Positions 29,681 through 60,600 of a DNA stretch of 64,000 nt are shown one piece after another. Position numbers and translations under genes: made by a program. Positions within the stretch are counted from its first letter, which is position 1; every line of letters starts with the position of its first letter. Below the pieces are notes generated by a model that worked only from the letters and a program-made list of their open reading frames with translations, ran no database searches and was not told where the DNA came from. The stretch spans positions 1 to 64,000 of the forward strand of contig NW_021833257.1 of the NCBI RefSeq assembly GCF_006345805.1, read 5' to 3'. This stretch comes from Octopus sinensis. Its lineage: Eukaryota.

Positions 29681-29886
29681 TAACACCACAAGGAATATTA
29701 TATGTATTAAAGTAATAAGATTTATATAAAGTTTTAAAAATATCACTATTAGTTTATTTTTTTATTTTTCAAAATATATTCTGACAGTTGAAATCATAAG
29801 ACTTTTTAAATTACGTAATTATTAAACTCCTTTAAAATTAAATTTAACTTAAAATTATCCAAACTAAAAAAACTTTAGTTAAAAAA

Positions 29887-30606: not shown

Positions 30607-30667
30607 TAGTTAAAAATTATATAAAACAATAAATCAATAGAGGATGAGGTGGGTCACTTAAACCTTT

Positions 30668-31300: not shown

Positions 31301-31309
31301 TACTTTTTC

Positions 31310-31830: not shown

Positions 31831-32509
31831 AATCTTGTAAATTCTGACTTTTTCTTTATTTTAATTGAGAATTCATTCATTATGTCGCGAGCGCAGCGCG
31901 CGACCGAGCGCTAGACGCAACTTTGACACCTAACAAGCCTATCATCAACAAATATATTATTAAATTATTTAAAATTTTAACATGATTTAAAATTAAAATT
32001 GAAATAACTTAAGTTTCCTGCTGGCTGTCATGCGTGGCAACAGCTGTTCCCTCCGTCTCGCTGGGAGAATTTATTAGTTTGTTGACTTTACTTAGTATTA
32101 TTAGGATGATACACTTAGTTTCCATTGAATCCCATAAAATAATTTATAAGTAGACCTTAATAGAAAAAGTAAAATCAATGAATACTGAACGCTAATTTGG
32201 TTTAGGTTGTGAGGGGGGTAATAATTTGACAGATCTCATTGCTATTTTTTCGTTTTAATCTCTAAAATTAGGTCTTCTAATCAAAAATGAACTGTGCAGA
32301 CAGACTTGCTCCTTCAGAAGATTCTTGTTTTGACATTTTTATAAATTATGAAGCATTTAGATTTTTTCTCATTATTCTAAAATATCAATTATAATTTTAA
32401 AATATTATTTTTATTTATGAAATCGGTTTTAAAGCTCATTCTGCTTTGGCATCGATTTTAATTTTTGTTATCGAATATATTTAATCCCAAATACAAGCAT
32501 GGGTATTTG

Positions 32510-35500: not shown

Positions 35501-36594
35501 GTAGCTGCGGTGACTGTTTCATTACGGTACAGTCCACCATCTCGAGAGCAACGGAGTTTAAAGAAACTTTATCTCTTGTATGTCTGGACATCTCAAAGGC
35601 TTTTGACAGCGTCTGGCACAGAGACCTCCTGGAAAGGATCGAACTCTGTGAGCCAACAGCGGAAGTCTTCCTCTGGATGCGCTTTCCTCTCAAATCGCTA
35701 CTCTTTTATCTCTGAGTCGGGCTTCTTCTCAAGATATATTTCGCTCCGAAGGGGGGTTCCGCAGGGGTCCTGTCTCAGCCCAATCTTTTTCAATTTGGTA
35801 ATGAGCAGTTTCCCCACACCCTCCGATCCAGGACATCCCTACTCCTCTACGCGGACGATGTTCTCGTTCTGGACACCTCGATGGACCACAATGCCTCGGA
35901 GAAACGACTTGCCGGCTACATTGAGGAGATAAAGAATTGGTGCATTGGTAAGCGACTCTCGCTGGCCATGGACAAATCTGCATATCTCCAAATTAACCCA
36001 AGAAAGTCGCAAGATCGCAAACCCGGCTCTTTGGTGGAAATTGCTCGCCCTGAGAGCATACGTTACCTGGGGCTCACAATCGACGCAAACTCGAGATACC
36101 ATTTGCATTTCAAACGGAGAAAAGGGAAAGCCATCGCCGCTCTCCGACTCCTAAGAAGCATGCACTTGAATCCAAATACCTTCCTATTTGTATACCATGC
36201 AACAATCTTGCCCAGCCTACTGTATGGTATGGAAGCTTGGTTCTACTCGAAACAATATGAGAAAATTCTGCGAAAATGCGAAAAAATACGGAGATACGCT
36301 CTAAAACTAGCCTATATGCTAAATCCATGGGAGCCTGTCCCAAGCTGGGCGGAGAGCAAGTCTCCAGAGCTACGGCAGGCCATCGAGGCTTCTATCCGAA
36401 CTTTTCGGAAACGCTCTAAAGTAACTGACCTATTCATCGATCGTGGAGAATAGCAGGTGTCCCTGCTCATAGACAGACAAAGCGGACGAACCATGGAAGA
36501 GCTCGAATGCCCAAAGCAATCGTCTCGTCAAAATTACTTTCCGCACTAATTTTCTGTCTCGCTCTTCTTTCTTACAATAAAATTCTTCGTTCTT
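32510..36594 (+). mobile_element. Full-length I/Jockey-group LINE (ORF1 with three zinc knuckles; ORF2 APE + RT), 4085 bp
   Basis: 12-bp TSD CATGGGTATTTG (32498-509, 36595-606). ORF1 from ATG 32576 with CFRCHQFGHTSHKC, CLVCGGEHRHNRC, CINCNSPGH. APE NARSI...NESKL; RT YRPISL, QWGFR, LDISKAFD, GVPQGS, YADD. Tail CAATAAAATTCTTCGTTCTT. Several frameshifts. Confidence 0.93.
32517..32575 (+). repeat. Five 12-bp tandem repeats (G/A)ATTGAATATCG forming the LINE 5' UTR
   Basis: Read directly; the ORF1 ATG follows at 32576. Confidence 0.9.
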
Positions 36595-36715
36595 CATGGG
36601 TATTTGTCAATTTATAGATTTTTTGATTGATCGGATCTAGAAATTGAGTGGTCGCTTGCTGCGCTCGGTCGCTCGCTGCGCTCGCGACAGAATATATTTA
36701 ATCCCAAATACAAGC

Positions 36716-37784
36716 CTATATTTTCTTTATCAAAATAATTCATGATTAACTTCGCTGTATGACACGGTGCATTATCCTGTTGAAAAACAAAGTCATTAAG
36801 TCCCATTTTTGCAACTGATCTCGGTAGGCTGTTGACTAAAAGATTTAAATATTTTGCAGAATTCAATGTTCCGTCAACAAAAACTAATTCTCCGACGCCG
36901 TTAAAAGAAAAACATCCCCATATCATGATTTTCCCTATTTTTTGTTTTCAAGCCAAATCAACCTGTTCCAAATTTCACTGTTGTTGAAATATTTTTGGAA
37001 TTAAGTTGTTCACCGCTCTTCCTATATACTATTTTTCGAGTTTTGTTTGGATTGGCGTAAAAAATGCATTCATTTGAGAAAATTGTGGTTTTCCATTTTT
37101 CATCAGAAATGGCAAGAAATCTTTTCGTTATTTCTAATCTTTTTTTAGTGTGTCTTATATTCAAAAATGGCTTATTTTTTGCGATACGTCCAAATATACC
37201 ATTTTCATTAAGATTTCTTATAACTGTTCTTGAGGAAATTGCTTTATTGGTTAGTTTCGTCATTTCACTTGAGATCTCTTTAGATGTTTTTGTTGGATTT
37301 TCTTCAGAATACTTTATCAATTCTTTCAAATCATTTTTATCAAGTATTTTTGGCCTTCCAGATCCTGGTTTCCGATGGATTGTGCCATTCTTTTTGTATC
37401 GTTGGATAAAATTAGATACTGTGGCCTCATGTACCCCAACTTTCAAAGAAATTGCCCGAAATGTCATTTTTGTTTCATATAAAGCAATAATTTTTCCTTT
37501 TGTAAAGTCATCCATATGCTTTTTCCTAAAATAGAGATATTAAATCATATAAAAAAAGATATTGTATAGATAATATTTTTGAATCATTTTTTTTGTCACT
37601 GACATATACTAACATATTGTGTGTCTGCTTTTAATTTTTCCAAATTAATGCAATTAACAAATATTTTATTAAATTAAATATAATAATTAAATAATCTACT
37701 AAGTTTTTTGAAATTAGAATATTTATAAGATTTTCAAAGAAAAACTAAATATGAATTTTGAATCATTTTTTTTGGCGAGGAGTG
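36716..37784 (-). mobile_element. Tc1 (IR-DR type) transposon, 3' end truncated
   Basis: Terminus TA+CACTCCTCGCCAAAAAAAATGATTCAAAA at 37784, with an inner repeat at ~37580. Motifs MDDFTKGKIIAL..GSGRPK, IWGCFSFNGVG, FQQDNAPCH. Sequence breaks before the third catalytic residue. Confidence 0.88.
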
Positions 37785-37789
37785 TAGAT

Positions 37790-38230
37790 AAATCCTTCCA
37801 TGTCTTTGGAGCCTTACGTACGATCGCTTAAGATATGCTAAAATTGATGCCACTCACAACATCACTTCTGAGTTTCAACCGAGACATCTTTTGGGTCATT
37901 CTGCGGTTCAAAAGGGGGACAACACGATTTGCAGAGATATATCTACTAAATTTTTCCTTAACCTGCAAGAGTAGAGATAACTTGCTAAGCTGGTTCTTGT
38001 GTTGATCAGAACACGGTGGGCCTTATATCGGCGTAACCGCAACTCCAGTCCTTCCTTGAGAAGGGTATTGGCCAGCTTCTTCAGTGCATTCAACGACAAG
38101 TTCGAGCTAAAGCATCGATTGAAGCAGGGTAGGCTACCCATTCCTGGGCATCCTGAAAGCTCTTCCCAACATTTAGGAAGGTACGGATTTAACCGAGTCC
38201 TGCTGGGTCGTGGACTTAGTCCCTAAATAT
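37790..38230 (-). other. Unidentified open exon-like segment spanning the left breakpoint of copy B
   Basis: Open frame GLSPRPSRTRLNPYLPKCWEELSGCPGMGSLPCF...IVLSPF begins right after a TTTAG acceptor. Only its first ~90 nt are present in copy A. Confidence 0.3.
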
Positions 38231-38434
38231 ATGCAGTAAGGTTCAATTTCATAAATTCCAACAAATATCAAATCTTAGTAAATCCAAAAAAAACTTCTAA
38301 TTATATTATAATAAAATATTCGTTTTATTATTGTTAATTTTTTGGAAAACCTAACATAATCGGATAACCACGTGCTATTCGTGATTTTTTTAATGGTGTG
38401 CATTGTTTTTATTCGTGAAATATATTTTCATATA

Positions 38435-39857
38435 CACCCCTCGACATAAAATCCGAACACTTAATTTTTAGCAAATTTTTAATCATTTTTAATAAAGAAT
38501 TTATTTGAGCTTCTTTATTTGTATTATTTTAACTATTTATATATTTAAATATATATTCAAACATATAATTTAAAGAAATAAAGCAAAAAACGGAAATTTC
38601 ATGACAAAAAAAACCGAACAAAATTTAATTAGTAGCTTGAATGCCTTCCTTTTTGTTGTAAACTTCCAAACTACGATTTTTCATTGAGCTAACAAGTTTT
38701 CTGATGAATTCCATTGGGATTTTCCCAAATTTCCGATATTTTTGCTTTAAATCAATTTTTGTACTTGTTCTGCTTTCTGACGTATCACTTGAAAGAACGT
38801 TTTTAATGTGAGCCCAAATGTGTTCGATTGGGTTCATGTCAGGTGACTGAGGTGGCCAGTCGAGCAAATTAATATTTTGAGACGACATATATTCTTTAGT
38901 TGCCTTAGATGTGTGGCAAGGCGCATTATCTTGTTGGAATATATAGTCGCTCAATCCCATTTTATTCGCTGAATCTTCAAGATTATTTGCCAGAATATTA
39001 ATATATTCCCCAGAGTTCATTTTTCCATCAATAAAAACTAATTTCCCCATTCCGAAATACGAAAAACAGCCCCAAACAAGAACTTTCCCTCCACCAAACT
39101 TAAAACTAGGTATTATCTTCGCATATCTCAATTTATTTCCTTTTTTTCTGTATTGATACATTCGTCTTGAATGGGAAAAAAGTTCAAAACTACATTCGTC
39201 GGAGAAAATAACTTTCCTCCATCCGCAGTCGGAAATTGCAAGAAATTTTTAGATATTCCATATCTGAGAGCAATATTTTTTGAACTTAGAAATGGTCGTT
39301 TCTTTACAACTCATCCATACAACCTTTTGAGTTTAGAATTCTTGTTATTGTACGTGCTGAGACTTTTTTTGTGTAATTTTTTCCATTTCTGAGACAAGGT
39401 AGCTGCAGTTCGAAAATTATCAGTTGATAATGATAAAAGAATCCTAATTTCATCTTGACTGAACTTGGGTGGCCTTCCAGATCCAGCCTTTCTGCACGTA
39501 ATCTCGGTTTTAGATATTTTTAACAAAGTCCCAAACAGTTGTTCGGTATATTTACGATGTCCGAAATCATTTATAGGAGAAATTTTGATTATATAAAGAT
39601 ATAATTTGTCCTTTTTTGAAATATTCATTTCTGTCTAATAAAAATTGTATCTGAGAGTGAACAAATACCGTTCGGAATTTTTGTCACTAGAAAACACGTC
39701 GTTTCTGCTTTAATTTTGAAAATTATATCTTCGAATTATATTTTAAATATATAAATAATTAAAATAATACAAATAAAGAAGCTCAATAAATTCTTTTATT
39801 AAAATGATTAAACATTTGCTAAAAATTAAGTGTTTCGGATTTTAATGTCGAGGGGTG
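38435..39857 (-). mobile_element. Complete Tc1 (DD34E, IR-DR type) transposon, 1423 bp
   Basis: ~190-bp TIRs starting CACCCCTCGACAT; TA TSD (38433-34, 39858-59); empty site TTTTCATA-TA-TTAAGGG in copy A (~18393-18409). Motifs GSGRPPK, VWGCFSY, FQQDNAPCH, WPPQSPDMNPIEHIW. Confidence 0.95.
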
Positions 39858-40076
39858 TATTAAGGGTTAATTTGTATTAAAATTGATTAAATATAGTGTG
39901 ATTGATAGAATTTCTTATTATATTCGATATTCTATCATTGAATTGGTTTATTTTCACATTAATTTAGTCTTTTTTACATTTTAACCATTCAATATTTCTT
40001 GGATTTTTTACACATTTTTATTTCTTGCCTATTTTTATATTTATTACAATTTTACTGTATGAAAATTCAATAATTT

Positions 40077-40990
40077 CTATATTCTTGAAATATTTTTATT
40101 TTTTTGTTTTTTCTCAATATTTTTTTTTTGAATGAGAATTTTGAAATGTTTTATGTTCCGAGTCGAGAATGAAATCGAGCCGAGACTGAAATTATGACAG
40201 CTGTCATCATTCCCAATCCTTGTCAAAAATAAGATAATCAAACTTGAAATCCGTCGACCAACTGAGCGAAGGAAGGGAAGAGATTTCCCCCTGCTTGTAT
40301 GGGAAGGTGGACATGCCGTCCCCTCTATCCAGTCCAACAGGTTCGAGGATTGACGGGACGCCGGCGGAACCGAGGGTTCTCTGTATGATCGAGTTGAGTT
40401 CACTGTCAGCCCGACACGGAGGGAGATTGCGATTCTTAGGCATTCCTTGTCCACCAGGTTTCCCATGGAAGGGAGAGGGAGAGCCTTTAACCAGGCATCG
40501 CTGCTTTCACAGCGACCTGCACGGAGGCAAGCGACACGGTGTTGATTGGAGACGGGAAGGATGCCTTTGAAAATTGCCTGACATGAGATTTCGTCCCATT
40601 GACGCTGGACAGATTGAGACTTGGGCAGCTTCGAGCCAAAACTGAGGCTCTCACCGACACAGGCGGCAGAGTAATCGTCAGACAATTTCCGTTTGGGGAG
40701 GTTTCCTTTTTCTTTACACCATCTTGCAATCTTACCATATGACCAAGAGTTATTTTCCATGATATTGATTTGTTCATGGAAAGATCTATAAGTAAAATAT
40801 CATCTTCATAAATGACCATCTCCATGTTAGGATGATCCACTTTAGGAATGTCACACATCTTATAATTAAATAAAGTGGATTGATGACAGATCCCTGTGGA
40901 ACTCCTCTCATAAGAGAAATTTTCCTCGACAATTGGTTTTCGACGCGTATGAATGTTTCTCTTCCGAGAGGAAACTCTTCATCCAAAGTA
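40077..40990 (-). mobile_element. LINE RT fragment fused to CRE-clade remnant (copy B)
   Basis: GVPQGS..EDDILL..LQD runs into SAACVGESLS..QRQWDE..AWLKALP..LEPVGLDRGDG near 40660. Confidence 0.75.
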
Positions 40991-41560
40991 AGACCGTCTT
41001 TTCATAATTATTTTAACGTGGATCATTTTTTATAGCGCGATGTCAGTGTTATGAGTCAACAATTTGTTCACTTGAAACTGTGTTAATAATTTGTGAAACC
41101 ATCCTTTCACCAAGAAATGTAACAATGTCTCTGCATTTGGTTTCCGAAGGAACAGAATGTCCATATTTATTAAAAAAATCAATAATTGATGTATTTCGTA
41201 ACTTATGAAGTGGAATATTTGCTGATAAAAATGCATTTGCAAGATCCACGGCAAAACAATCAGCAGTGACCTCATTTTTACTATGAGTATCCAAAGTATA
41301 TCTGGGATTCTCAGAATATGCTTTTTAGAATGTCTGTGCTTATCAATAAACCATTGCTTATTGGCAGTTACGTAAGAATTACATAATTTGCAGAATAATT
41401 CTGACCTGTTCTGAAATGATTTGCTTATTGATAAAAGAGTTTCTTTAATATAGAAAAACTCGCGTAGAAAAGTGGAGGAACATCAGAAAGCTCGGATCTA
41501 TACTTGGCGACTCAGAAGATATTACTCGACGGAAAATCTTACTTAGCCAAAATAGCACTC
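40990..41560 (-). mobile_element. hAT-like (CGGBP1-type) transposase fragment (copy B)
   Basis: ORF 41049-41294 DLANAFLSANIPLHKLRN...VPSETKCR. Confidence 0.5.
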
Positions 41561-42027
41561 AAAAAATTACAATTGATTTTATTGAGAACGTGCATTAACT
41601 AACTAACTTTCTCTTGATTTTGTTAATTTTACAGTTAACTTTTACAGTCTCAAATCTCAATTTATTTAATTTATACAAATTTAGATTGAGATATCCAGTG
41701 TTACTTCACTTTGATATTGATAATTGCGAAAAATGGAATTCAATGCGGCACATGGTCGGAAACAATGTCCGCTTCCAACCTCGGTGTTTAGTTGACGTCG
41801 AGTATAGAAAGAGACCCAAGCGATCAGCCCTGCCTGTGTTTGCATATATCTTTAGACAAAGTAATCTTTACAATTGCTTTATTAAAACTAAACTTGAGTT
41901 ACATCTCCCTAATTCTTAAATTTACTATCCTCCACTGTGAGTATTACATTTTTTGACATGACACAAGTCAAATTCGAATATAAATTTTATTATTTGAATA
42001 AATTATTAAATAATTGTGCACGTTAAA

Positions 42028-42887
42028 ATGAACAATGACATGGAAGCTTTGTATACACTAGAAGAGTTGACATATCTAATATTATTATAGAGGAGAGTGC
42101 CTCCCATCTTCCTCCAACGACTCGGAAAGCAGCACAGATTGGGTGGCCTTCACAAATTCTCTACGAAGACATGACCAATACATTCCTCCTTCTCCCCCTG
42201 TCGAAGAGGACGACTGGAACATCCCCTCAATCCACCTCACCAACATCACCCTTCAATTACACCCAGTCGGACTCCTCCGTCTGTCCATCAACCCTATTTC
42301 CGCTACCGTGGAAGGGACGAGTGATACCCCTCCACTTGCAGAGGACACTGTCCTTCTCCTCCACAAAGACACTCCTCTAGGCATAGTTAAAGAAATATTC
42401 GGCCTTGTTGAAAAGCCCTCCTATGTGGTCGGCCTGTGTGAGGAAGCCCTCGATCTGATTTCTCGGGGAATAGTTCTCAACAACACACAAGTGTTCTGTG
42501 TCCCCCAAGACCCCACACTCACTCAATTTGTCTTCAATGTCGACTCCCTTAAACAGTCTCTTCTTGGAGGTCTATTTTAGAACACGTGGTCTGACGCTTC
42601 TTGGATTGGGAACACTGAACCACCCCCACAGGTTGTTTTATTTAGTCTTATTTATAGCACACTGGACTACTCTGACGACGAACAGGAGAAGTGTGCCCGA
42701 CTCGAGTCTAAACTGGGAGTCACCAATGAGGAGGCTATACGAATTCGCCAACAAAGGAAACAGAGATCGATCAATCGAAGAAAACCCCCCACTATGGAAT
42801 GTGGCCTCCTCCTTGGCGATATCCGCCACGATCTGCCTACCCTTACTATCCTTTCTATCCACCATTTTGATTTACTTTATTTTATAA
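42028..42887 (+). CDS. Orphan ~250-aa protein with C-terminal hydrophobic anchor (copy B)
   Basis: Paralog of 22696-23557 with the same start context and introns; ORFs 42143-42580 and 42498-42887. Confidence 0.65.
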
Positions 42888-43352
42888 AGATTAAGACACA
42901 GTTGAAATGATTCTAATTTGTCTAACATTTGGAGTATTTCTCTCCTTAATGAACCACGTCTCATAGCTTGTCAAGTTTGTAGGAATAACTATTAATCACC
43001 ACAGCCTGTATAAAACTCATTTCTAAATAATTTTCCGAAAGACAAAAATACTCAAACACTCATCCCATTTAAGAAGTTGTACGTGGTCTTTCTATAGTCT
43101 TGTAAGAAACCAATTCTCTATCTATTATACAAGGTTTTTATTTTTCTTTATTGTCATTGTAGTCTATGAATACGTTTATATTCTATCGACATGTCTTCAA
43201 AATCTTAGAGAGGATGTTGAAAAAATGGCATAAGCGGAATGCACAAGTGCGGGGAAAGCGATATGTGTTAATAATAATTAAGTAAATAAGCCCACAAAAT
43301 AAATCAAAGGATAACAGTATTAGTCAAACTAACCCATTAAACAAGAAGAGAG

Positions 43353-44166
43353 TCAATATGTTTTATTTCCATGTAGTATACCGCAAGTACTGTTTCTCAG
43401 ATGGCAGAACCATTGTTTAATAGCAGTAAAGCGGTTTATGGCTCTTCATCATCAGAGAAGAGAAGGAATAATAATACAATCTTCACCTTGCTAAAAATAT
43501 ACTAAAGTAATGTCAACCTTCCAATTAACTGGGGTGGCTAAGGCATGAACATCAGTCATAATGACAGAATCAATCACTCGAGAGCTTACTAAAATATTAA
43601 AACTACATAAACCTAACATTCCTTCCAGTAGTAGCCGGATAGAGAATACTAAGTCTCATTTCATATCTTTATCAATCAAATAACCTAAAGATTAGTAAAA
43701 CCAAGCAAAATAATTTAATATACCGCACGTGCCGGGAGAGTATTATTATCTGGGCTAATTTCTCGAGGGTCCAGCATCCCCAACTGGGTGACAATTTTCT
43801 TTCGGAATCGTCTATTATAGGAAATGGCAAACTCTCTGTTGTTATATTTCCATGTGCAAGAATGTCCTAATTATTTGCTGTGGAATTTGAATGTACTTTA
43901 ATCTATTCTCGGTGGCTCTCCACGGTATCACAGGACAGGCCAATTAGTTTGACATTTCTTTGTTCAAATTCATTGACCTTTTTGCTAGTTCAGCTAATTC
44001 GGTCGTACAGACCGGAGTAAAATCTCGTGGATGTGAAAAAAATAAACACCAACTATTATATTTATGTATAAAAGTATTACCTTGATCCAATAAAACTGTA
44101 AAGATCAAAATCACCCATTGTGGTCTGCAGTTGAAAATTTGGGAACTTGTCGGAGAGACGTAGCAT
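43353..44166 (-). pseudogene. PRDX6: 1-Cys peroxiredoxin (Prdx6), copy B: intact start and PVCTTE motif but in-frame TAG; promoter displaced by insertion
   Basis: [11 protein letters not shown]...[20 protein letters not shown]...SHRE*IK|DILAHG...FPIIDD...YPATTGRN...ATPVNWK. TAG at 43903-05. Confidence 0.88.
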
Positions 44167-44272
44167 TAATAAATGTGACCGGTTCATAATGAGATACGGT
44201 TGAATACGAGCCGTTAAAAAGATCGATAATTAATATACCGATTCAAAAGGCCAATTAAAATAAAGGCAAACG

Positions 44273-47200
44273 AACGAACGAACAGATTTTATTGACTTAG
44301 CAACCGAAAGAGAAGAGTTATATGAAAAGGTTTTATTAAAATCGAGACACCGAAAGCCTCCTCCTTGCTTTCCTTTTCACTTCTCATGCCCTTTGCAATG
44401 AGCAGAGGACTTGCCGAATGTTTTGAGTTTGTTCGTCTAGCTCTCTGGGGAGATCCTGATCAAGCCGTAGCTTATACGCCAGTTTAATCGCAAAGCGCCT
44501 TGTTTTCTCCAGTTTGGTGATTATGCGATTTCTCTCGTCTGTAGGGTACCAACCTTCATGTCCATAGATAAGGACTGGTTCTACAGTCGCCTTATAGATG
44601 AAGAGAAAGGTGTCTGGGGAGAGATGGAAGCGTATAAGGCTTCTCAGGATCCCGGAACATTTCCTTCTTCTAGATTCCACGAACTTAAGGAACGATCCGT
44701 CAGCCCCGATCGTTACCCCAAGGTAGCGTAGGTCGTCAGAGATTCTTAGTCCCATTGTCTCCAGAAGTGGTTCTCTTCCTTTCCGAGTTTTAGAAACCCA
44801 CGTGATGGTGGACTTGTCTCGTGCTAAGGAGAGGGCTTTCTCCGTAGCCCAAGACTCAATCCTCGCTATATATTCCCTCAGCCTTTTCCAAGAGAGGTCC
44901 TTGGATCGCGACAGATCCGTAACCAATATGTCGTCCGCATAGATAATTAGTAGACTCTCCGGTTACTGGTTTCGGGATGTCGGCAACGTATAAGTTGAAA
45001 AGTAGAGGGCTCAGGACCGACCCTTGAGGCACTCCCCTCCTTAGATTGATTGTATCCGAGGTCCGGTTACCACATCTGATAAAAGACTTTCGCATGTGTA
45101 AGAAATTCTCTAGCCATTTGACAGTCCTTTGCCCCGGATGGATACTGATGATCCTTTCCAGGAGGCCTAGGTGCCAAACGCTGTCGAACCCCTTTGAAAT
45201 GTCCAGACAAACAGCTGTCATCCCCATCTTGTGTGTAAGGGCCCTCGAGATTTGCGTTTCCAGTTGGGCAAAGTTTCCACACAGGACTTCCCACGTCGGA
45301 AACCCCATTGTTCTTTAGCCAGATAACCTGACTCCTCCACGAGAATAGATAATCTGTTAAAGATTATACGTTCCATGATTCTTGATATGGAGCAGATGAG
45401 ACTTATGGGTCGGAAATTTTTCTGCACGGTCTTTAGGTTTCCCTGCCTTTGGAATCATTCGTACCACGGTTTTCTTCCATGCATTCGGGACGTAGCCAGT
45501 CTCCCAACTGGCATTGAAAAGTATCGTTATTATCTTGACTAGGCTTATCGGGGCCTCTTTGAAGACTCGGATGGGTATGTAATCAAAACCCGGTGCGTTG
45601 TCCTTGCATCTTTTAATTGCTAGTAGGGTTTCATCCAGGGTGATTGCGTGACAAAGTCGACCAGGGGACATTTTCGCAGAGGCTATTGCCCTCTTTTTAT
45701 CGTCCATTATATCTGTCGGGACAAAACAGCTCGGGTCGACATCTTGAATTTTCGCCAGTTGTTGACGTAAAGCGTCAGGTACATCGTCTCGGTTGATGGT
45801 ATAGCCATTTTCTGTGGTTAAATTGATTTCATCTCCTTTGCATTCCGTTTCCTTTAGGCGATTATATGCCTTCCAGAAACTTGGGTGTCTTCGATTAAGC
45901 TTAGAACATTCCAATCTCCAAGCTGAGTCAATGTTTTCTTTAGACCTTTTGTCGATGCTCTTTTTAAGAGAGGAAATCATTGCTCGTAGGCGTGTGCAGT
46001 CTGTTGGGTCAAAACATCTGCGTAGCCTCTTCTGGTATCTTGCCTTTTCTTTCAGGAGACTCACTACTGTGTCGTCGAGTTCATGAATCCCTCCACCAGA
46101 GTGTTTAATGAACTTTTTCCTGGAGAACTTCTCCAAAGAAGTGTTGATAAGATTCCTAACGAGCTGGTCCAGACTTTCAATTTGTTTTGTCGTGTGAACT
46201 GCTACCCGATGTATGAGTGACTCTAGCGAGGTTGTCAGGAATAGGGACACAAGGGGCCAATTCGTTTGATTGGTATTGTATCCAATAAATACTTCATCTT
46301 GCAGAACTGAGCTTGCACGTAACACCATTGTTTGAGGAAGGTGATCGCTTCCGATATCAATTTCAATGCGTGGGCGGTCACAGAGGGGAGCTAAGCAGTC
46401 CGCCACGAGAAACACACCAAGTCGATCTTCTCCGTAACATGAGAAGTGATTCGTTTCGTCAGAGGACCAGACCTCAAAACCGTGTCTCGCCGATAAGGTA
46501 TGAAGTAACCGTCCGTCACTGTTTGTTGATACGCATCCATATAGCGAGTTCTTTGCGTTTAGGTCTCCGACTAGAATCGACTTTCCATTTGCCTTGAAGA
46601 AACCTCCAACTAGGTCTGGGTAACTCTTGAGGTCCTTTGAGTACATCCCCCCAATAGTGATCCATCCCAGAGAAGTATGGAGCTCGAGAGACAGCATTTC
46701 GCATCGACTTTCTTCTATTCTCCTGTGGTTTCTTGTTTGAAGGTTTTCTTTATAGTAGATGCACGATCCGGTTCCCGCATTCGCGAACGGTTTCCAGGCA
46801 ATACTCAATGACTTGTATCCTTTGATGCTGAAGGATTGGCCTTCCTTCAGTTTCGATTCATTGATAACAAGTATATCCATGTCTACGGAGCCAATCATGT
46901 GGAGTAGCTCCGTAGCCCGTCTCCGAAGAGATCGGGCGTTGACGAGCGTTATAACGCTCATATCTTTCCGTCTGGATACTGGCGGCAGACCTCTCCCTTT
47001 AAGAGCGCCACCAGGAGGAGTAAACCCTCTCCCTTCTTTTTTGTCAGCGGCTTTTTATCCGTAATCATTAATTTGATGTCCGACTCCAGCTTCTCAGCGT
47101 ATGACAGTCCCTCCATTTGCCACGGCATAATAGAAGGGTTCTGCTTCTCTGCTTCCCTTTTCGATGGGACTGTATCTCTTTTGGGTTTACCGCTTACAGT

Positions 47201-48225
47201 CTGTAGTGGTTTTCCTTCTTGTTTAGGAATATCGGTAGCCAGTGCGTCTGGTTTTGAAGGCTCGACGACCACACTCAGTGCTTCTGATTTCGGATGGGGT
47301 ATTGATCCAACTCCAATAAATTGAGTTCCTCGCGGAGGTTCTCAGTTTCTTCATCTGTTTGGGTTCCTACGTCGAAAGTGTCCTTCTTTTTGTCGACCGT
47401 CTTCCACTCTGACGGATGTGGTTTGCTTTTAGGACTGGGTTTTGTTGTCTCTTCTTTCATATGGCAACTGCTGCTGATATTGTCTTTGGAATAGACAATT
47501 TTTTGTGTCCTAGGCCGGAAGATCTCTTCCTTTGGTGATTTTTGGACTCGTTTGGACATACTTAGTATGACCTTTAAGGCTTCCTTCGCTTTAGGGCAAC
47601 CTCGAAAGCTTGCCATATGCTCTGTCGATCCGCAATTAATACAGATTTTGGAGATTTGCCCTTGTTTTGAGCACGAAGCTCGATCATGATCTTCTCCACA
47701 GAGTAAGCACCTTCTTTTTTCTTTGCAGTTTCGGGACAAGTGCCCAAAATTCTGACAGGAATAGCACTGTGGTGCCGGTTTACGGAACCACTCACAAGAT
47801 ACACGGTGAAAAGCAATTGTGATGCCCATTCTGACCAGAGATGCTGCCTCACCTCGGTTCGGGATTACTACCTTCGCCATTGGCAATGGGCGACCATTTT
47901 TTGAGAAACATTCTACTTTGAATCCGGGCGACAGTATAGACTGAAGATAGTCTTCGAGTTCTGGAGTGCCAACCCAATACGGTAGGTTCCTTAGGACGAC
48001 CTCTGATGGGGCGAGGGATGCTTCCTTGATGGTGTGACCTTCTACTCCAAAGGGTTTTGTATCTCGGAAATCTTCAGTAAAACTTTTCGCCTCTTTCTCC
48101 GACGGAAAAGTGAGGACAAAATCCCCGTTGCGGCGACGATAAACTTTCGATTGTTTTACGCTTTCACGTGAACATAAAATATTTGCGATGATGATGGCCC
48201 CCAAAGACTGGTTGTTTATAGTTAA
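44273..48225 (-). mobile_element. Near-full-length I/Jockey-group LINE, 5'-truncated within ORF1
   Basis: 11-bp TSD AAAGGCAAACG (44262-72, 48226-36). ORF1 CYSCQNFGHLSRNC, CLLCGEDHDRASC, CINCGSTEH. ORF2 NARSL..NESKL, QWGFR, LDISKGFD, GVPQGS. Tail CAATAAAATCTGTTCGTTCGTT. Confidence 0.93.
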
Positions 48226-48502
48226 AAAGGCAAACGTCCCGAACTAATGATTGAACTTTAAATTTTTGAAAAAATGATGTTTTATATTTGAACCATGTTT
48301 GCTTTAAAATAGTAAAATTATTTACAACATTAGCAAATTATAATGTGAATTATTTTTATTTTTGATATTATAAACTGCAACATTAGCAAATTACAAGTTT
48401 GTAACAACTTTAACTCTAATCTTAACTTTAACTCTAACTATAAATGATTTCAACGTTATTTATAAACATATTCATCATAAAAAAGACACTAAAGAAAACA
48501 GA

Positions 48503-48713
48503 CCCCAACCCTAATCCCTGACGCTAACCCTGACCCTAATTCTGACCCTGACCCTAATTCTGACCCTAACCCTAATTCTGACCCTGACCCTAATTCTGAC
48601 CCTAACCCTGACCCTAATTCTGACCCTAATTCTGACCCTAATTCTGACCCTAATTCTGACCCTAATTCTGACCCTAACCCTGACCCTGATCCTAACCCTG
48701 ACCCTAACCCTAA
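48503..48713. repeat. Interstitial telomere-variant hexamer array (CCCTAA / CCCTGA / TTCTGA; TTAGGG-type on the minus strand)
   Basis: About 35 hexamers with a (CCCTAA TTCTGA)n 12-bp higher-order core. Confidence 0.92.
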
Positions 48714-49214
48714 TATGATTTAACGGCATTCACGCCATTTAACGGCTCGTATAACGCCACTTTGACGGCTCGTTTAACGGCTCGTATTCAACCTGGGCTC
48801 GTATTCAACCGGTCACAATAAATTTAACTATTTGTTCTAAATAAAAATTGTCACATTTTAAATATAAAAAAATTATTCCGAATATTTAACAATTTAAAAA
48901 AATGCTTCAGTTTATAAAAGTATTGAGCCTTTGGACTAAACAATGGGTGGTTTTCTGGTTCAATAAATAAATAAAAGGTTCAATAAAAAATAAATGGGCA
49001 GTATTCCACATTTTCTCTTTTTCCCATATAAATTATAAATCAATGATATATAAAAAAACTAAGGTTTACACGATTCCTTCTGAGAAGGAGAAGGAAATGT
49101 TAGAATTGAGGGTGTTATTCAAAAAATTATAATTATTATAAAATCAAATAAATTAATATTTTATAACGTGGTTTTTTCTTGGTTGTATAACATCTTTCAT
49201 ACCAATGATAGTTT

Positions 49215-49880
49215 ACAGTAATGATGGCATACGTTTCAATTGAGTTTATTAAGTTACTGATTAAATCAGTTAGTTCTCGATATATAACTACATTTTTAAC
49301 CTATGATGACTAACGATGGTCTACTTATGATAATGATGACCTGTAATATGACTGAGGCTATATTGAGTTAGAGCACTTTTTAAGTAATTTAAACAATCTG
49401 TTTGTTTTCAATGGTATTATATTTACTTAAGCAATTATTGTCTGTAAATACAATTCAATTTTATATATACTCCTCTTATCTACAACTAAATTCATTTTGG
49501 ATGACCTGATCGGATAACCATCTTCCCTGTTAAGTGTGGAAAGTCCTTTGTGTGTGACGCGACATCCCCAGACAACTACGCCCCTACTTTTCTAAATTTC
49601 TAATCAGTGAGTTCTGGGTAGGTTTCTACTACAGCAAAAATATAAAAATATGTTTCTTTTAATAGTGGCATTGGCAAGTCTCCACTTGTAGTTTTGTCAG
49701 AAATCGGGGAATGGATCTTTATTAAGGCGAGACCAGCTGGTTATTCCGAGGAATTTTATTTGCCATCTACCAAAACACTTTTAAGCCAATCTTATATCTT
49801 CTAATTAATATAACCGATAATTTCTATTTTTAAGTTTATTGATATGTAAAACGTATATTCAAATAACTAATTTATTAATT
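49215..49880 (+). other. Possible small host gene divergent from PRDX6 (disrupted by Merlin in copy A)
   Basis: ATGGCATACGTTTCAATTGA/GT..CAG micro-intron pattern and open segments such as SGIGKSPLVVLSEIGEWIFIKARPAGYSEEFYLPSTK. Not assembled. Confidence 0.25.
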
Positions 49881-49930
49881 AGCCCTATAAAGACAAGTAT
49901 ATAATTTATTTGGCATAAATGAAACTACAA

Positions 49931-52691
49931 TCAGGAATAAATAAGCGGAATGTCATTAAAGGACATTACTGGAGCAGTTTTGAGTAAATCATGTGCATGT
50001 AGATAACAACTCGAAGCCTTCTCATAATCACCGGTCGATTCGAGGACCTTTCCAAGTAATCCCCTATTAAGTACTGCTAAAATAATGAAAACCAGGATCT
50101 ATGCTCAAAAGGATCCACCTTAATGGCCTCCCTGAGATAGTTTTCTGATTCTGAAAAAAGTTCAATTTCATAATATGCCAAACCCTACAATTAAAAAAAT
50201 ATATAACCAGTTCATAAAGAATGTCAAAATTCCTTGGATCAACTGCGCTCAACGTTAGAAACCACTCGAGAGCCAAATCGTTCATTTTTGTAGCACGCAA
50301 AAATTTAGCTTTCTTTAAAATATTTTTATCGCTAATTTACCATAATTTGTAGATTTAAAGAGTTTGGAGATATATTTTGTGCTTCAATTAAACATAGCTT
50401 CACATCCTCGAGCTTATCCAGTCCAAGAAAAATTTCAGCTTCAATTTTAAAAAAACAATTTACCAGTTCGTAACCAAATTTTGAATTCGTCAGGATCAGA
50501 CTTACACCATTCTCTGTTATTACAATAACAATTCGCCACATTTAAAAAATCGTCCAAATTTAAATCGAGGTTTGTTTCTTTGCATGTGTTTCCATTTTCT
50601 TGTTCTGTGACAAATTCCGACTTTCCGGACTATTTTTCTCAAATTCAGAAAAGTTACATTTTGGTCAACATTTTACCACACGTTTGCAAAGCCGAACTAA
50701 AATCACCCATCTCGGACTCGATGCAACTCTTGATCAGGAAAAAGCTTAAATAAACGTCAAATTGAGTTCTACTTTGATGAGGACGGATATTGCATTAAAG
50801 AACTCTCAACACATTTGATGGCTGCTCCATAGTCTTTAGAAGCAGTAAAAAGCAACACCAGAAGAGTCAAAGTAGTCTCTTTATGCCAATTAAGTCTGAT
50901 AGCTAATTGGCAATAATGAAGAGCTCTATCAATCCTCCTTTCTAGGGCGTAGTAAAGTGACAGGTGAAATGCAGGCAGATAGTCACGTGGGTCAGCTTCA
51001 TGAGACCTAGACAAAATCAGAATACGGATTTGTACCTGTTCAAAAAATCTAACGCAGCGGATAGGTGAGTAGAAGATTGAGAAAAAATTTCCTGTCTTCT
51101 GGCAATCAGAACGTGATAGAGACCACAATAAAGTAAGGCACGAGAATGAAAAGGAGAAGAACCGTCACACAGATCTAATAGTTGTTTAGTATAATCCTCA
51201 AGTGTTTGGTCAATCGGCTATATTTATGTATTGAAATTATTTACCAATGGACAATGTGGGTCAAAATGTATACAAATAATGTGTATTAGAGTATCGATGT
51301 CTCCGGGGACAAGAGAATTACAAACTTTAAGAAAATGATAACATTGTTTGTACTAATCAATACAAAATAAATTTTTACTTTTTTTTCTTGGGCCAGTGTA
51401 AATGCAAATTGCCGTAAGGAATAAAAATCCCCGAGACAGTATTTAAGAATGTCCCACAATGCCTGAAATAAACTGAGAACAAAAAACTGAATTGAGTCTA
51501 CAGGGAGACGATAACTGCCCGAACAGTAGACAATAATAATTCACCAATTTGACAGTTTTGGGGATATTTCAATCTGGGAATCGGCAAGCTGTAGATTTAG
51601 ACAAAAATATGTTCACCAGTAATGGTTTCATTAATTTTTGATAGACGCTTATCAAATAGCAAAGTTCCTCTTCCCGATTTAAATTAAGGAGACTAAAAAC
51701 CTGTAATAAAAACACAAATACGTGGATTGGGATAGATTTGTGTCCCCCAACTCAGAAATAGACTCGGAAACTGATTCGTAGTTATCAAATGTGTCTCATG
51801 AAATAAAAAATCAATGTATCGTTCAATTATACTCTGTTGTGTTAATTCATCCAACTTTACCTTGTAAAAATTGGTCAATTTCTCAATGTTGTCAACAACT
51901 AGCAAATCTCTGAAAGCTCTTATGGCTTGTTTGCCTCTGCTGAATAACAGTTTTTATTTAAAGACAAATACAGGCTGTCAATTTGATTTTTTAGGTGAGT
52001 TTCCATTGCTTCTATTAGATGGTACCCGAGATATGTGCTTAGTTCTTCAGATCTAGACTTACCGAGTTATGAGAACTCTGGAATAAGCAAATGAAGTTGT
52101 TTTAGGAGAGCTTTAGCAATATCCGACGACATTTTGAAATATTTTTTTACAGATGTGCCCATTTTGTCACATTTAAGTCCTAATTTCTCCAAAGATTTTG
52201 CTATAAAACTATTCTGATTTATTTTTACCGCAGAAAACATAACTTTCTCCAAGAATGACCATCGAACGGTTACAATTTTGTAATTTTTCTGTCTCGATTT
52301 TTTGAAGAGCGAATGATTGGAGCAATTCTTGATAATTTCCAAAGCAAATAAACATTTTAATGAAAGCATGTTCATATCGTTTCATATTTTGAGCAATAAG
52401 AATGCCTGTGAGTTATTATAAAGAGGCATTGTACCACACGGTGGCATTGATCACCTTGTAGACGACATGTAGCTCTGTTCTGTCAAGTTTAGCCTCACAT
52501 ATATCAATCAATCCATTTTCAAGACGCTTTTCGAGGGTTATAATGTTGGAAACGTTTTCTGAAAATATTAATTTCAGTGATGGACCGATGTAGGAAGATT
52601 TGTTGCAGAGGGTAAGACACTCGTCCCATTTTCGTAAAAAACGTAATTGGTCGACACGCAGTAAAAGAGCTTCACTTTTACTAATGGACAT
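49931..52691 (-). CDS. TTC7: Tetratricopeptide repeat protein 7-like (copy B)
   Basis: Paralog of 26920-29680; same TPR motifs in ORF 50769-51128. Confidence 0.8.
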
Positions 52692-52946
52692 TAACACCAC
52701 AAGGAATATTATATGTATTAAAGTAATAAGATTTATATAAAGTTTTAAAAATATCACTATTAGTTTATTTTTTTATTTTTCAAAATATATCTTGACAGTT
52801 GAAATCATAAGACTTTTTAAATTACGTAATTATTAAACTCCTTTAAAATTAAATTTAACTAAAATTATCCAAACTAAAAAAATTTAGTTAAAAAATTATA
52901 TAAAACAATAAATCAATAGAGGATGAGGTGGGTCACTTAAACCTTT

Positions 52947-53580
52947 TCAAATATTCGCGAGATAGCGCGAATAAATATAGTAGTCACATTGATCGTCAAT
53001 TGGACAGTTCCAATCCATACTAAACCATGTTTTTTAAAAAAATTTAAAGAGCCTGCATTGTCACGAAATATAGTGCACGTTATTTTGTCCATGTCAACTC
53101 TAATACTAGTCAAATATCAAATTTTACAACTTAATAGCGATTCCGAGTAAAATATTGAGCATAAACGATCCAACTCCGCAACCACGAGACTTTTTCTCAA
53201 CTTGAATGTCGTAGCAATAAGCAATTGCTTCTCTTTCTTCAGTTATAAAACGAAAATGAAGAAATCCTAGTATCGGAGAATTAATGTTTTCATTTCCTTC
53301 TTTTTCTCGCACGACTAATTAATGTTTTTTTATTTTTTAATTCTGAAAGTTTTTCTTTGTCGTTCCATCCAAATGAGCTGTTTATAAACATATTGTATAT
53401 ATTGTCTTTAACACACAACAAATAACGTAATAGAATGGGCATCGAGTGCATTCCCCAAGTTATGTTGACCTGCCAATTTTCACTAAAATAAACATCAATT
53501 TTAGCATTTTATACTCACGTTGATTGGGGTTCAAAAACCTCTTTTGATAAATAAGCTTTTTTGCATAATTCTCGGCATTT
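52947..53580 (-). CDS. NAA40: N-alpha-acetyltransferase 40-like (copy B)
   Basis: Paralog of 30668-31300; ORF 53124-53312. Confidence 0.8.
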
Positions 53581-54696
53581 TTGGTACTTTTTCTGTTTGA
53601 AGGTTCTTGGCCAAACATCACAACGAAGGAATATTATTTTTATTTATTTTTAACACCAAAACCACGTTAAAAACAGAACAAATTAATCACGTAATTCCGA
53701 TGCATCTCACAAGCGACTTCATCTTCGCTTGGTAATCTTCCCACGAGCCCACACCATTTCGCACCGGACGGCTATTGAGCTCGTTTTTTAAACTGACTTC
53801 CTTCGATATCCTGAACAACCAGTACAATTGGTAACGCAAGTGGACCTTCTTTTGGGGTTGATTTCTACTTTGAAAGAGATCAATTATGTTAGAAGAAGCA
53901 AATGAGCTTGTTGAATAAAGTCGGTTTGAATAAAGAACGAGCTAATTTGGTTCTTCTAAATGAATAATATCTTTCAAACTGGAGATAAGAATTTAACAAA
54001 ACGAATTCGGAATTCTAATATATTTAACTTATTGAACTTTGATCACCACTCCAAAAGTTTCACATTTTTAGTACTTTTATGATTTTAACTGGTGATATTA
54101 TGAGGATAAAAAATCTTGTAAATTCTGACTTTTTTCTTTATTTTAATTGAGAATTCATTCATTATAAGTAAGGTTCAACGTCATTTCATTAAAAATGGTT
54201 TTCCCAAAAAATTTTATTATAGTCTCAAAATTTAGATTAAGTGAAAAATAATAGTCAATACAAAAATCTCTTTATTTAAAGGACAAAAATAACCAAAAAC
54301 ACCAAATAGTTATTTCCATGAACAATGAAACGGAAATAAAGACACCGGGATTCGCTATTTAGCAAGAATGTTACTGGGGAACATAAACACTTCAAAGCAA
54401 GTTTAATGAATTCTATTCTTCTGTGAAACACCCAAATACTTAAAAATTATAAAGGACTGCGAAATTTATTAAAAATATCATTACTCTTGGCCATGCTTAA
54501 AATTTACCTTTATAAAATTTCAATCTAATTCAAAATGATGTTTTTTTTCAAAATAGACGACTCTTGTGCCAAGTCAAATAACTAAAGTAGATGACTCTTA
54601 GGGAAAGTCATTAAAACTTTTAGTTTTTCACGAAAAATGATTTTTTGTTTAAAAATTAGTAATTATTAATAGTAAACAAATGAATTTAAGTATTTG

Positions 54697-57600: not shown

Positions 57601-60600
57601 AGATAAAATTAGGAAAAAATATTCCTACTCTCGCATTATTAGTAATTGAAAAGACACTCGAAGCTGTTAATAAACCATTCTATTAAATAAAAATAAAATT
57701 GGATACAATTCTGACAGAGGTGTCAGTTTTACAGTCAAAAAATGGTGTGGTCATTAGTATAGTAGAATTTCGAACGGTGACCGTTTGATTACTAGTAAGA
57801 TGCCTTAAAGGAGAAGGTCCGATAATAAATGTATATACTCCAACGTTATTTTCGATCAAAATAACATTTTCGACTACAATGCTGGCAGTAGAGTGTACAT
57901 AAATTCCAAAATTATAAAATTTCCAAATAATAAAATCTAAAAATAAAACATTTAATACCATACTTTGGATAGTGAGACAACTCGGTTCTGGAGAATGTTC
58001 TTTGAGATGAAAAATAACGACGCCATTTAATCCAGATTTAGCAATATTTTTCTTAAAAGTTGAAAGTCCGCCGTTGCATGAATCACCGCTAATACGATAA
58101 GCTATCGTCTGAGAGCCGGCAACAACATTTCCAATCAATTCAGTCTATCAAAATTAATTCGTTAAAAATAAAACATTGGTAGCTTCATTTATTGTGATTG
58201 CTCCTTTCCATAATATATTTTGATCCCATTTTCCATTATATAATCCTTCATAGATATGAGAAACGATAAGATTTTGTTCTATTTTTGTACCAGAACTTGT
58301 TGATATAATTCCTAGCGAAGTTAAAATCGAGAATTATACCAGGACCAACGGGGCGATATATTATATTGTTTGATACCTCTAGCTTATTTGTTCTATAAAC
58401 TCCTATAGTCGGTGAATAGCATTCATGAAATGATGACATTCTGACATATGCCGGTCTTAATGAATTAATTTCACCAATGTCCATAAATGTTATCGAATAT
58501 CTGGCATCAGTTTTACTATCATAATCGAATTGGCCAGTTTTATAAAATTCGACGTTCTTAATACGCGCAAAACCTTAATTTCAGTAAAAATATAAACCTG
58601 TATAAATTTTTCCTTCATGTACTGTTTTTCCTACAAGAACACGGCCTCCGAAGGGAGAAAATGTCTGACCTCCGATAATCTTTATATTCCTTGATAACAA
58701 CCCAACGGAAGCAGAAAGCTGATGGACTGTATTCCCTACAATGTAAAGTTCACCTATAAAATTAAAATTTGTATCGTGCATACCCAAATGTTTATAATTA
58801 AGAGGTCTGTTTAGCTCCAAGACTGTTCCGCCATTCATTATATTGTTTATAACGACTTTTTCGCCTTCATTTACATTATAGGATGTCGAAGAAATAATAA
58901 TTTCATCTCCGATATTCCAATCAACAATATCTTGCAAGTAAATTTTTCTATCTCCAATATTTGCAGTCTTGTTCAATGTAGTAGAATAAATATTTTTGGC
59001 TTCGCCATGAAAATCTAGTCCTCCAAAACAAGCTATAATTGAATTATTTTTTCAACTTTCTTACCAATTACTTTAGTACCTACCAACGGACCAGTTATTA
59101 ATGGAAATGTTGCAGAATTTTTATTCCCAATTAACGTTATTTCGAGCTTTCCACGGAAAGAACGGTCTTCTGTTCCAGCTATTATTCTTCCGCCTCTTAT
59201 AAAAATAATTTCGACCGACAAATAAAAATCTCGATATCCGGATATTGTTGAGTTGTCAATATCGTCGAATTCTAAAACTCCATATATATGTAATTCCTTT
59301 ATTTTTGGAAGTTTTACATCCACCAATACGTAAACATCTTAAAGATAATTATTAATAAAACTAGCCTGAAGAAATAACAACTGTATCACCATTTGATGGC
59401 AATCCCCCATTTCCAAAGTCTTTACTTGCGTTCCATTTATTGTTTGTAAAACGCCAAATATTAGTATTTGACCATCTCAAAGCATCTTTTGGTCTGTTCC
59501 GTGACGGAGGGAGACTTCCTTTATCTGCTGGAGCCTCACATTTTAAATAAAAGCAGCGATAAGCATTAAATCTTATGTTAATTCTTCGAATATCAGAATA
59601 TTTGTTCGGATTATTTGTTTTTGGCGACATGACTAAGTTTTAAAATTTAATTTACTACCGATGTAGCTTAATTTATTTTCAAGTGAATCATAGTACCAAT
59701 CTCCATTTTTATTCTGCTCGTGGCTTAAAGGGAGTAATGACATAGGGCGAAATGTACTATCAATAGTAAAAACTCGATCAGGTTTATAATTCATCGGAAT
59801 ACTGACAATTACATAGTCTCCACTCTGTTTGATTATAAGCACGAACATTATTATACAATCAGATTATCAATAACTCCAGTATAAGAGATATTCGTTAAAT
59901 TGGATTCCGTTGATAATGTAATAAATATTTCATCATTTGTAGGGAAAATGGACATCCATCCAAGAGGTGAAGTAACCCTTTTTTCAGCAAAGTAGCTTGT
60001 ATCATTTCCATAAGAATTTACTATTTTTATACTGCGCCCCAAATACATATCAGGATTAATTTCTATTTTTAATTAAAATAATTACTATTAAATGACAATC
60101 TTGCGAACCTGTATTTGGGTGGGCAAAAGAGCGATTCCAACCCACGAGTGTTATTTGTATTTATTGCACAGTCGGGCGGTATAAGTTTAGAATATGGAAC
60201 AATATTTGTTTTAGAACCAGTCAAAGATCCATCAGAGTCAACAATAATCCCTTCGTGTTTCCAATTCCATTTGTATCGGTTTTGCGAATTTATAAAATGA
60301 ATATTTTTCATAAAATATAAAAATCCTATTAGAAATTACTAATATAAATAAAACCAACCTCCTGAAAAAGTTGAACTTGTCCCAGAAATTTTTGCTAAAA
60401 CAAAACATTGACCACGTGATGTATTGTAGTTATAAAAATTAACATTATTAAGAGTCAATCCACTTGATAGAGGTAGAACAACTCCACTAGAAGAAGATAT
60501 GTGTGTAATTCCGGGAACGTAAGCTAAAAAGGTTTATTTTAAATATTACCAATTATATCACTGTTATTTAGATATGGACCTGAATTTGAATATATTGTAT

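Follow-up and report, generated by a model that had tools for sequence, protein, structure and literature searches.

This article concerns a 64,000-nucleotide stretch of contig NW_021833257.1 in the Octopus sinensis assembly GCF_006345805.1 (the window, from here on), and in particular a 4.65-kb block that lies upstream of the 1-Cys peroxiredoxin gene PRDX6, only 7 nt from its start codon. We read the block as a three-layer nest of ordinary mobile elements. The outer layer is a short non-coding DNA transposon, which we call F and which probably belongs with the Ginger/TDD elements; inside it are a long interspersed nuclear element (LINE) and a telomere-like array of hexamers; and the PRDX6 next door was already a pseudogene. 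We put the probability of this overall explanation at roughly 75%. Much of the case for F comes from a second element in the window, E2, which has the same terminus and target-site duplication (TSD) as F and carries the remnants of an integrase.

Anatomy of the nest

Between its terminal inverted repeats (TIRs) the composite runs from 44174 to 48817; without the LINE, F is a TIR element of 680 bp (99 + 581). Its end pair is TGTGACCGGTT...AACCGGTCACA, with TGTGA at both ends (TGTGA...TCACA). TGTGACCGGTT (44174-44184) and its reverse complement (48807-48817) have no further match in the window. The inverted similarity of the arms extends over 45 nt at 82% complementarity, perfect for the 11 nt at the tip, and within the arms are perfect inverted matches of 16 nt (44197-44212 with 48796-48811) and 15 nt. 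ATAAA abuts both ends. The motif TTTAACGGCTCGT occurs three times near the right end (once with one mismatch) and once, inverted, near the left. The only open reading frame (ORF) in F is a repeat artefact across the hexamer array, and Rfam and ARAGORN found no non-coding RNA in the focal region. F is thus shorter than about 800 bp, non-coding and bounded by TIRs and a TSD, which is the size and structure of a miniature inverted-repeat transposable element (MITE). An 11-mer inverted repeat with a 5-bp flanking repeat is expected about 0.64 times per shuffled A+T-rich window and is not significant alone. What makes F significant is the combination of G+C-rich 45-nt arms, clustered subterminal repeats and the recurrence of its terminus and TSD in E2.

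The LINE has an endonuclease and a reverse transcriptase, an 11-bp TSD and a truncated 5' end, and it can be placed at the type level only, as an APE-type (apurinic-type endonuclease) LINE. Like other APE-type LINEs with a CCHC-knuckle ORF1, it pairs a TSD of about 11 bp and 5' truncation with a tail of short tandem repeats, not poly(A): the 3' end reads CAATAAAATC and is followed by a (TGTTCGTTCGTTCGTT) microsatellite, with an (AACG)3.8 tandem at 44269-44283. ORF1 has no ATG and changes frame once, near 47275 (zf-CCHC, E=1.4e-6), and it overlaps ORF2 in an ATGA stop/start at 46958-46961. We call the LINE 5'-truncated because its ORF1 begins where the ORF1 of another, related LINE in the window has already reached residue 114 (the alignment covers residues 114-323 of this second LINE's ORF1). 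The closest protein to ORF2 among 5.8 billion is Octopus sinensis LOC115229389, at 48% identity, whose own locus is octopus-like in composition.

The second LINE has the CAATAAAAT...TTCGTTC 3' end in common with the focal one and sits between a 53-nt inverted pair (31859-31911 and 36661-36713). A LINE in a TIR element is therefore found at 31859-36713 as well, and such nesting is routine, not special to the focal locus. The second LINE adjoins a perfect direct repeat of 26 bp, GAATATATTTAATCCCAAATACAAGC, with copies at 32473 and 36690, and in its 5' region there is a 12-nt tandem repeat at 32506-32575.

The third layer, on the minus strand, parses into 35 in-register hexamers: 15 TTAGGG, 8 TCAGGG, 9 TCAGAA and a few singletons. 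The canonical unit makes up 43% of the array (15/35), and its longest perfect run is two units. A (TTAGGG TCAGAA)5 block gives higher-order periods of 12/18 nt. Allowing up to one mismatch, CCCTAACCCTAA has 10 matches, all within the array, against 0.14 expected from shuffles.

This anatomy had been set out in a sequence-only reading of the same DNA, which described a nested composite at 44169-48822, just 7 nt away from the PRDX6 ATG on the upstream side: within a TIR element that has a TSD lie a telomere-like array and a LINE with a TSD too. All of its structural statements hold, with one small coordinate correction. The LINE is indeed co-oriented with PRDX6, and its AATAAA (44293-44288) lies about 122 nt upstream of the ATG. 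The view that the 680-bp element is a DNA transposon is likewise supported, by the TIRs, the TSD, the subterminal repeats and the recurrence of its ends in E2. Coordinates are collected in Table 1.

Table 1. Features of the nest, of the related elements and of the duplicated segments (window positions; A and B are the two copies of the segmental duplication).
Feature	Position	Strand	Details
PRDX6-B, 1-Cys peroxiredoxin pseudogene	43363-44166	-	six-frame reading, tblastn, A/B alignment; 27-30-nt introns
Left TSD of F, ATAAA	44169-44173	.	same 5-mer at both ends; 7-bp reading AATAAAT possible
Left TIR of F	44174-44218	+	begins TGTGA; contains one GGTTGAATACGAGCC and one inverted TTTAACGGCTCGT
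Left 99 bp of F	44174-44272	.	bounded by the TIR and a copy of the LINE TSD
LINE TSD AAAGGCAAACG, copy at LINE 3' end	44262-44272	.	exact 11-mer, only at 44262 and 48226
APE-type LINE, 5'-truncated, frame-broken, 3,953 bp	44273-48225	-	Pfam zf-CCHC, Exo_endo_phos_2, RVT_1
LINE ORF2, apurinic-type endonuclease and reverse transcriptase, three frames	44384-46961	-	ORFs 45357-46961, 44856-45308, 44384-44926
LINE ORF1 remnant, RNA-binding-like N-terminal part and CCHC knuckles	46958-48204	-	ORFs 47275-48204, 46958-47272
LINE TSD AAAGGCAAACG, copy at LINE 5' end	48226-48236	.	
Right 581 bp of F	48237-48817	.	A+T-rich spacer, hexamer array, subterminal repeats, TIR
Degenerate telomere-like array, G-rich strand on minus	48501-48713	-	TRF periods 12 and 36; hexamer parsing; shuffle enrichment
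Right subterminal direct repeats	48738-48806	+	TTTAACGGCTCGT x3, GGCTCGTATTCAACC x2; putative transposase-binding sites
Right TIR of F	48773-48817	-	ends ...TCACA
Right TSD of F, ATAAA	48818-48822	.	
E2, TIR element TGTGACCGTCC...GGACGGTGACA	19315-20847	+	TSD TTTAT on both sides; H2C2 and C-terminal integrase remnants; DDE core deleted
Retroposon-like insert with E2	19305-21273		copy A only; TSD GCTCAT; empty site in B near 40774
PRDX6-A, paralogue in the other duplication copy	24042-24826	-	same TAG, extra TGG>TGA, PVCTTE>PVCRTE, no ATG
Further copy-A insert	29888-30598		copy A; clean TSD, empty site in paralogue
Second LINE, heavily frame-broken	32510-36595	+	own 11-bp TSD ATGGGTATTTG; ends in CAATAAAATTCTTCGTTCTTC
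Tc1/mariner-type element	38435-39857		copy B only; DDE_3 transposase remnant, about 38-nt TIRs, TA TSD

E2 and a probable integrase-type transposase

The window contains a segmental duplication of about 14-16 kb, 18107-31883 (copy A) and 38142-54165 (copy B), about 96% identical and with a PRDX6 pseudogene in each copy. Comparing the two copies is how E2 was found: it lies inside an insertion specific to copy A. Its ends read TGTGA on the left and TGTCA on the right, its arms align over about 40 nt, and its TTTAT duplication is the reverse complement of the ATAAA of F, with the wider context A-ATAAA-T common to both insertions. The terminal 8-mer TGTGACCG occurs four times in the window against 0.62 expected, a count that none of 100 shuffles reached, and F and E2 account for three of these four with their ends. 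GTTGAAT and GCCGTTRA-type subterminal motifs lie near the ends of both elements. A third terminus-like motif, GTGACCGTCC, is found at 25325-25334, inside another copy-A-specific insert (25290-26610), the ORFs of which look IS1595/Merlin-like by eye; Pfam gave no match to this insert at E<=0.01.

What lies between the TIRs of E2 is telling. The coding content consists of the remnants of one gene only, beginning about 170 bp from the TIR. The N-terminal piece scores as Integrase_H2C2 (PF17921; 28.7 bits against a cut-off of 25.5) and matches just two proteins among 1.84 billion cluster representatives. One of the two, P0154, is a protein of 430 aa with H2C2 and rve domains and no reverse transcriptase, encoded by a gene that stands free on its contig with non-coding A+T-rich DNA on either side; it is similar to the integrases of prototype foamy virus (PFV; E=7e-19) and other retroviruses. 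The C-terminal piece of E2 aligns with residues 352-429 of P0154 (E=1e-9). E2 also has an in-frame TAG and, after its CVHCQ codons, a 26-nt GT...AG stretch resembling an ultra-short intron. Because only the N- and C-terminal remnants of an integrase homologous to P0154 lie between its TIRs, E2 reads as what is left, after an internal deletion, of a TIR-bounded element with a gene for a stand-alone integrase. The contigs of the integrase relatives (L002-L004, 0.9-1.4 kb) have no TGTGACCG-type ends.

As this integrase-bearing element has the same terminus as F and the same 5-bp ATAAA/TTTAT duplication, F is best read as a non-autonomous, MITE-like member of the Ginger/TDD-like, integrase-type group of DNA transposons. 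Published Ginger elements end in TGTNR, their TIRs measure tens of bp (about 40-270) and their transposases are integrase-like; the TSDs of TDD-4/5 are 5 bp long, and Ginger2 favours A+T-rich targets (PMC2836005). F and E2 resemble them in their TGTNR...YNACA ends, in TIRs of 45 nt at 82% (F) and about 40 nt (E2), and in their A+T-rich targets; through its 430-aa homologue, E2, itself with the DDE core deleted, would add a stand-alone retroviral-type integrase with H2C2 and DDE. The TSDs of F and E2 can be read as 5 bp each, as in TDD-4/5 and unlike the 4 bp of metazoan Ginger elements, and it is from these two insertions only that the target appears to be ATAAA; metazoan Ginger2 duplicates 4 bp at RTATAY (PMC2836005). 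There are other differences. The C-terminal module of the integrase relative resembles, by eye, a GPY/F region, which is said to be absent from Ginger2, and F itself encodes nothing and has a telomere-like minisatellite inside. Ginger1 and GingerRoot are also integrase-type cut-and-paste elements with TG...CA-like ends and TIRs (PMC2836005, PMC6839031), but Ginger1 has CCGG/CCGT-specific TSDs of 4 bp and extra OTU/Ulp1 protease domains, and GingerRoot has 6-bp TSDs, mostly TA...TA ends and TIRs of 100-150 bp. On this view the TGTGACCG-ended elements would define a Ginger/TDD-like, integrase-type group of transposons that duplicate the 5 bp ATAAA.

A history of the locus might then run as follows. 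F would have been moved in trans by a stand-alone retroviral-type integrase of about 430 aa, with H2C2, an rve DDE core and a C-terminal module. Such an enzyme would recognise the subterminal repeats, uncover CA-3'OH ends and insert them into the target with a stagger of 5 bp, placing F at ATAAA 7 nt upstream of the PRDX6 start codon and duplicating 5 bp. The LINE would next have entered F by target-primed reverse transcription, leaving an 11-bp TSD, a microsatellite tail and a dead-on-arrival, 5'-truncated copy. The array probably goes back to a single capture or seeding, with later growth by slippage. A truncated, frame-broken LINE is the ordinary outcome of such an event in a pre-existing element; the nesting itself is plain to see, and it suggests that the LINE came after F had arrived at this locus.

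Two copies of a PRDX6 pseudogene

We assigned the gene to PRDX6 from homologues named peroxiredoxin-6 with PF00578/PF10417 (best identity 53%). The ATG of PRDX6-B, the copy next to F, is at 44166-44164 (minus strand), and the F insertion point is 7 nt away. PRDX6-B and PRDX6-A both have introns of 27-30 nt, and both have TAG where all relatives have a conserved Trp (HRE*IK). To this PRDX6-B adds two private 1-bp deletions, in A-runs. Neither copy has the open frame, PVCTTE motif and start codon, taken together, of a functional PRDX6. An alternative genetic code was considered for the in-frame TAG and rejected: long ORFs are closed by all three stops, and copy A also has TGA at a Trp. Because the nonsense codon is common to both copies, PRDX6 was, as far as the sequence can tell us, most likely inactivated before the copies diverged, or else the TAG spread by gene conversion. 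The shared codon makes silencing by the insertion moot, and the insertion is without demonstrable regulatory consequence for PRDX6.

Transposon insertions found in one copy only interrupt the duplication, and several of them have clean TSDs and an empty site in the other copy. One is the Tc1/mariner-type insertion in copy B, which has a clean empty site in copy A at about 18401. The insert that holds E2 looks like a retroposon, made up of 19305-19314 and 20853-21273, with a tRNA-like head (minus strand) and an (ATAAT)n-type tail by eye, the tail containing E2; ARAGORN called no tRNA in 19305-21273. Between A and B, indel events run at about 1.4% and substitutions at about 2% (a ratio of about 0.7), and half of the small indels are in homopolymers. 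Residual errors of a long-read assembly may, with such a pattern, mimic frameshifts.

The site of F itself is another matter. Copy A is joined at 24826|24827 where copy B has 44162-49099, and the junction shows only GT microhomology. We considered copy A as an empty site for F and rejected it, since the deletion covers the flanks too. The gap could be an unrelated deletion, or an ancestral element could have been excised or otherwise lost here. In a segment of 14-16 kb, chance would put a deletion of about 290 bp across the insertion point in only about 2% of cases, and for this reason F may already have been there when the segment was duplicated, copy A losing it afterwards through excision or deletion.

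Alternatives, and the wider window

Several points weigh against our account of the locus, and they are best taken together. There is no clean empty site: the gap in copy A extends from 12 bp to the left of the composite (including the ATG) to 282 bp to its right. The TSDs of metazoan Ginger1 and Ginger2 are 4 bp, not 5 (PMC2836005), and the TSD of F is itself ambiguous, readable as 5, 6 or 7 bp (AATAAAT), as its outermost T/A also match the flank. The interiors of F and E2 are unrelated, with only weak A+T-rich matches, and F and E2 are therefore different families with common end features, linked by termini, motifs and TSD only, F having no coding capacity of its own. F is known from one copy only in the window, and a second composite was not found there either. 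The exact pattern TGTGACCGGTT N0-20 GAATACGAGCC of its termini is absent from the metagenome and viral contigs scanned. The shared internal motif GGTTGAATACGAGCCGTTAAA has no match in the metagenome contigs, nor does the E2 subterminal motif in the viral contigs. No autonomous element with the exact TIRs of F was seen. Finally, the frameshifts of the LINE and of PRDX6-B could partly be assembly noise; the nonsense substitutions in PRDX6 are not of that kind.

Could F be a solo long terminal repeat (LTR), left behind by recombination between two LTRs? Its TGT...ACA ends, 5-bp TSD and length of 680 bp all fit, and the termini and TSDs of integrase-type DNA transposons are known to mimic LTR elements (PMC2836005, PMC6839031). 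A solo LTR shares with F its TG...CA ends, its 5-bp TSD and its length of a few hundred bp, but lacks what else we see: a long TIR, inverted clusters of subterminal motifs and a TIR-bounded, integrase-only sibling. Inverted similarity over 45 nt, with binding-site-like motifs inverted at both ends, is unusual for LTRs. The repeats around E2, whose terminal 8-mer and TSD match those of F, are inverted and not direct, and the integrase remnants of E2 start so close to the TIR (about 170 bp) that there is no room for gag or reverse transcriptase. The window has no second copy of F with which to make an LTR pair. We regard a solo LTR as improbable, and keep to F as a probable Ginger/TDD-like, MITE-like element.

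The array raises a different issue. TCAGGG and TTGGGG variants resemble proximal-telomere or subtelomeric variant repeats. The composition of the array suggests a degenerate hexamer minisatellite, not a working telomere tract, and its (TTAGGG TCAGAA)5 block and 12/18-nt periods point to the expansion of a short seed by slippage. GingerRoot elements often hold captured host fragments, a precedent for foreign cargo (PMC6839031), and an origin in captured subtelomeric DNA that later expanded in place is on that account reasonable. Interstitial telomeric sequences associated with transposons are one parallel; MITEs with an internal mini- or microsatellite, as short non-coding TIR elements, are in general build like F; in the literature searched, no integrase-type MITE family with a telomere-like array has been described. 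It is conceivable, if rather a long shot, that the F family carries the array in its consensus, that an ATAAA-preferring integrase-type transposon thereby seeds telomere-like tracts genome-wide, and that the deletion in copy A is an excision scar. Two fainter signals should be put on record: a weaker run of TAACYY hexamers (TAACTT/TAACTC...) in F upstream of the main array, at 48406-48443, and TTAGG-like fragments in E2, at about 20355-20500. They may be older, decayed telomere-like tracts or chance. The E2 stretch was tried as a homologous array and rejected, being at least two positions off the TTAGGGTTAGGG 12-mer.

That F is instead a MITE of another superfamily with 5-bp TSDs (Transib, or a short-TSD lineage of hAT), its resemblance to E2 coincidental, strikes us as very unlikely. 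Besides the length of the TSD it has the iterated subterminal repeats of F on its side, and subterminal hexamer repeats are typical of hAT/Ac-like elements. Transib termini are of CACNNTG type and hAT termini of YARNG type; the TGTGA of F is neither. The terminal 8-mer, the subterminal motifs and the sequence of the TSD all recur in the integrase-bearing E2.

The sequence-only reading had gone further than the anatomy, to a vehicle: the whole 4.65-kb composite would transpose as a unit, spread telomeric-type repeats and a retroelement to internal sites, and be able to silence genes, here PRDX6. Intact TIRs and a TSD around the composite make joint mobilisation mechanically possible, and the deletion in the paralogue covers exactly this site, as excision with enlargement of the gap would. 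We nevertheless think it most improbable. The LINE is 5'-truncated with broken frames, and there is no sign that the 4.6-kb unit ever moved whole; a LINE nests in the same way in an unrelated TIR element; and neither the window nor the collections searched hold a second composite. As for silencing, the PRDX6 nonsense codon is common to both paralogues, with PRDX6-B having its two private deletions besides, and for the placing of telomeric repeats at internal sites the single copy of F is the sole basis. The block is ordinary nested-transposon clutter, not a gene-silencing device, and there is no evidence at this locus for a new mechanism or a regulatory effect. Least credible of all is an assembly artefact, a chimeric repeat join in a noisy long-read assembly: the high indel-to-substitution ratio between the duplicated segments and the homopolymer indels do betray imperfect polishing, but random misjoins would not produce two nested elements with perfect TSDs exactly at the expected junctions, nor four other copy-distinguishing insertions with clean TSDs and empty sites in the paralogue.

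Beyond these elements the window holds some apparent host genes and a few more transposon remnants. On the minus strand there are a kringle-like ORF (394-846), a tRNA-Val(AAC) (8522-8594) and, at 57683-63921, exons of a CEMIP/beta-helix (PF24606-type) protein, the CEMIP-like exon having a best match of 51% identity. Transposase remnants lie at 7450-8268 (DDE_1, pogo-like) and at 14657-15127 and 36958-37515 (Tc1-like by eye).

To whom does this DNA belong? Among animals, introns of 27-30 nt are found only in myxobolid myxozoans and Dicyema (PMC13644364). Such introns in PRDX6, and an Octopus sinensis relative for ORF2 of the LINE, hint at a parasite of cephalopods and at a possible sharing of a LINE lineage between host and parasite. 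Dicyemids are parasites of cephalopods, and a LINE with an octopus relative would suit such an animal, though this is speculation.

What the analysis adds to the earlier anatomy is threefold: the TGTGACCG-ended elements are assigned to integrase-type transposons, the window is seen to contain a segmental duplication, and PRDX6 turns out to be a pseudogene in both of its copies. In annotation, the PRDX6 copies in the window should be marked as pseudogenes and the 4.65-kb block masked as nested repeats. If the array did prove to be part of the F consensus, it would show concretely how interstitial telomere-like tracts can spread; such tracts could recruit telomere-binding or heterochromatin factors or serve in chromosome healing, and the deletion in copy A, as an excision scar, would show recent cut-and-paste activity. 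And if the host is, as it appears, a highly reduced parasite (myxobolid or dicyemid), these elements come from an animal whose mobile elements are poorly catalogued.

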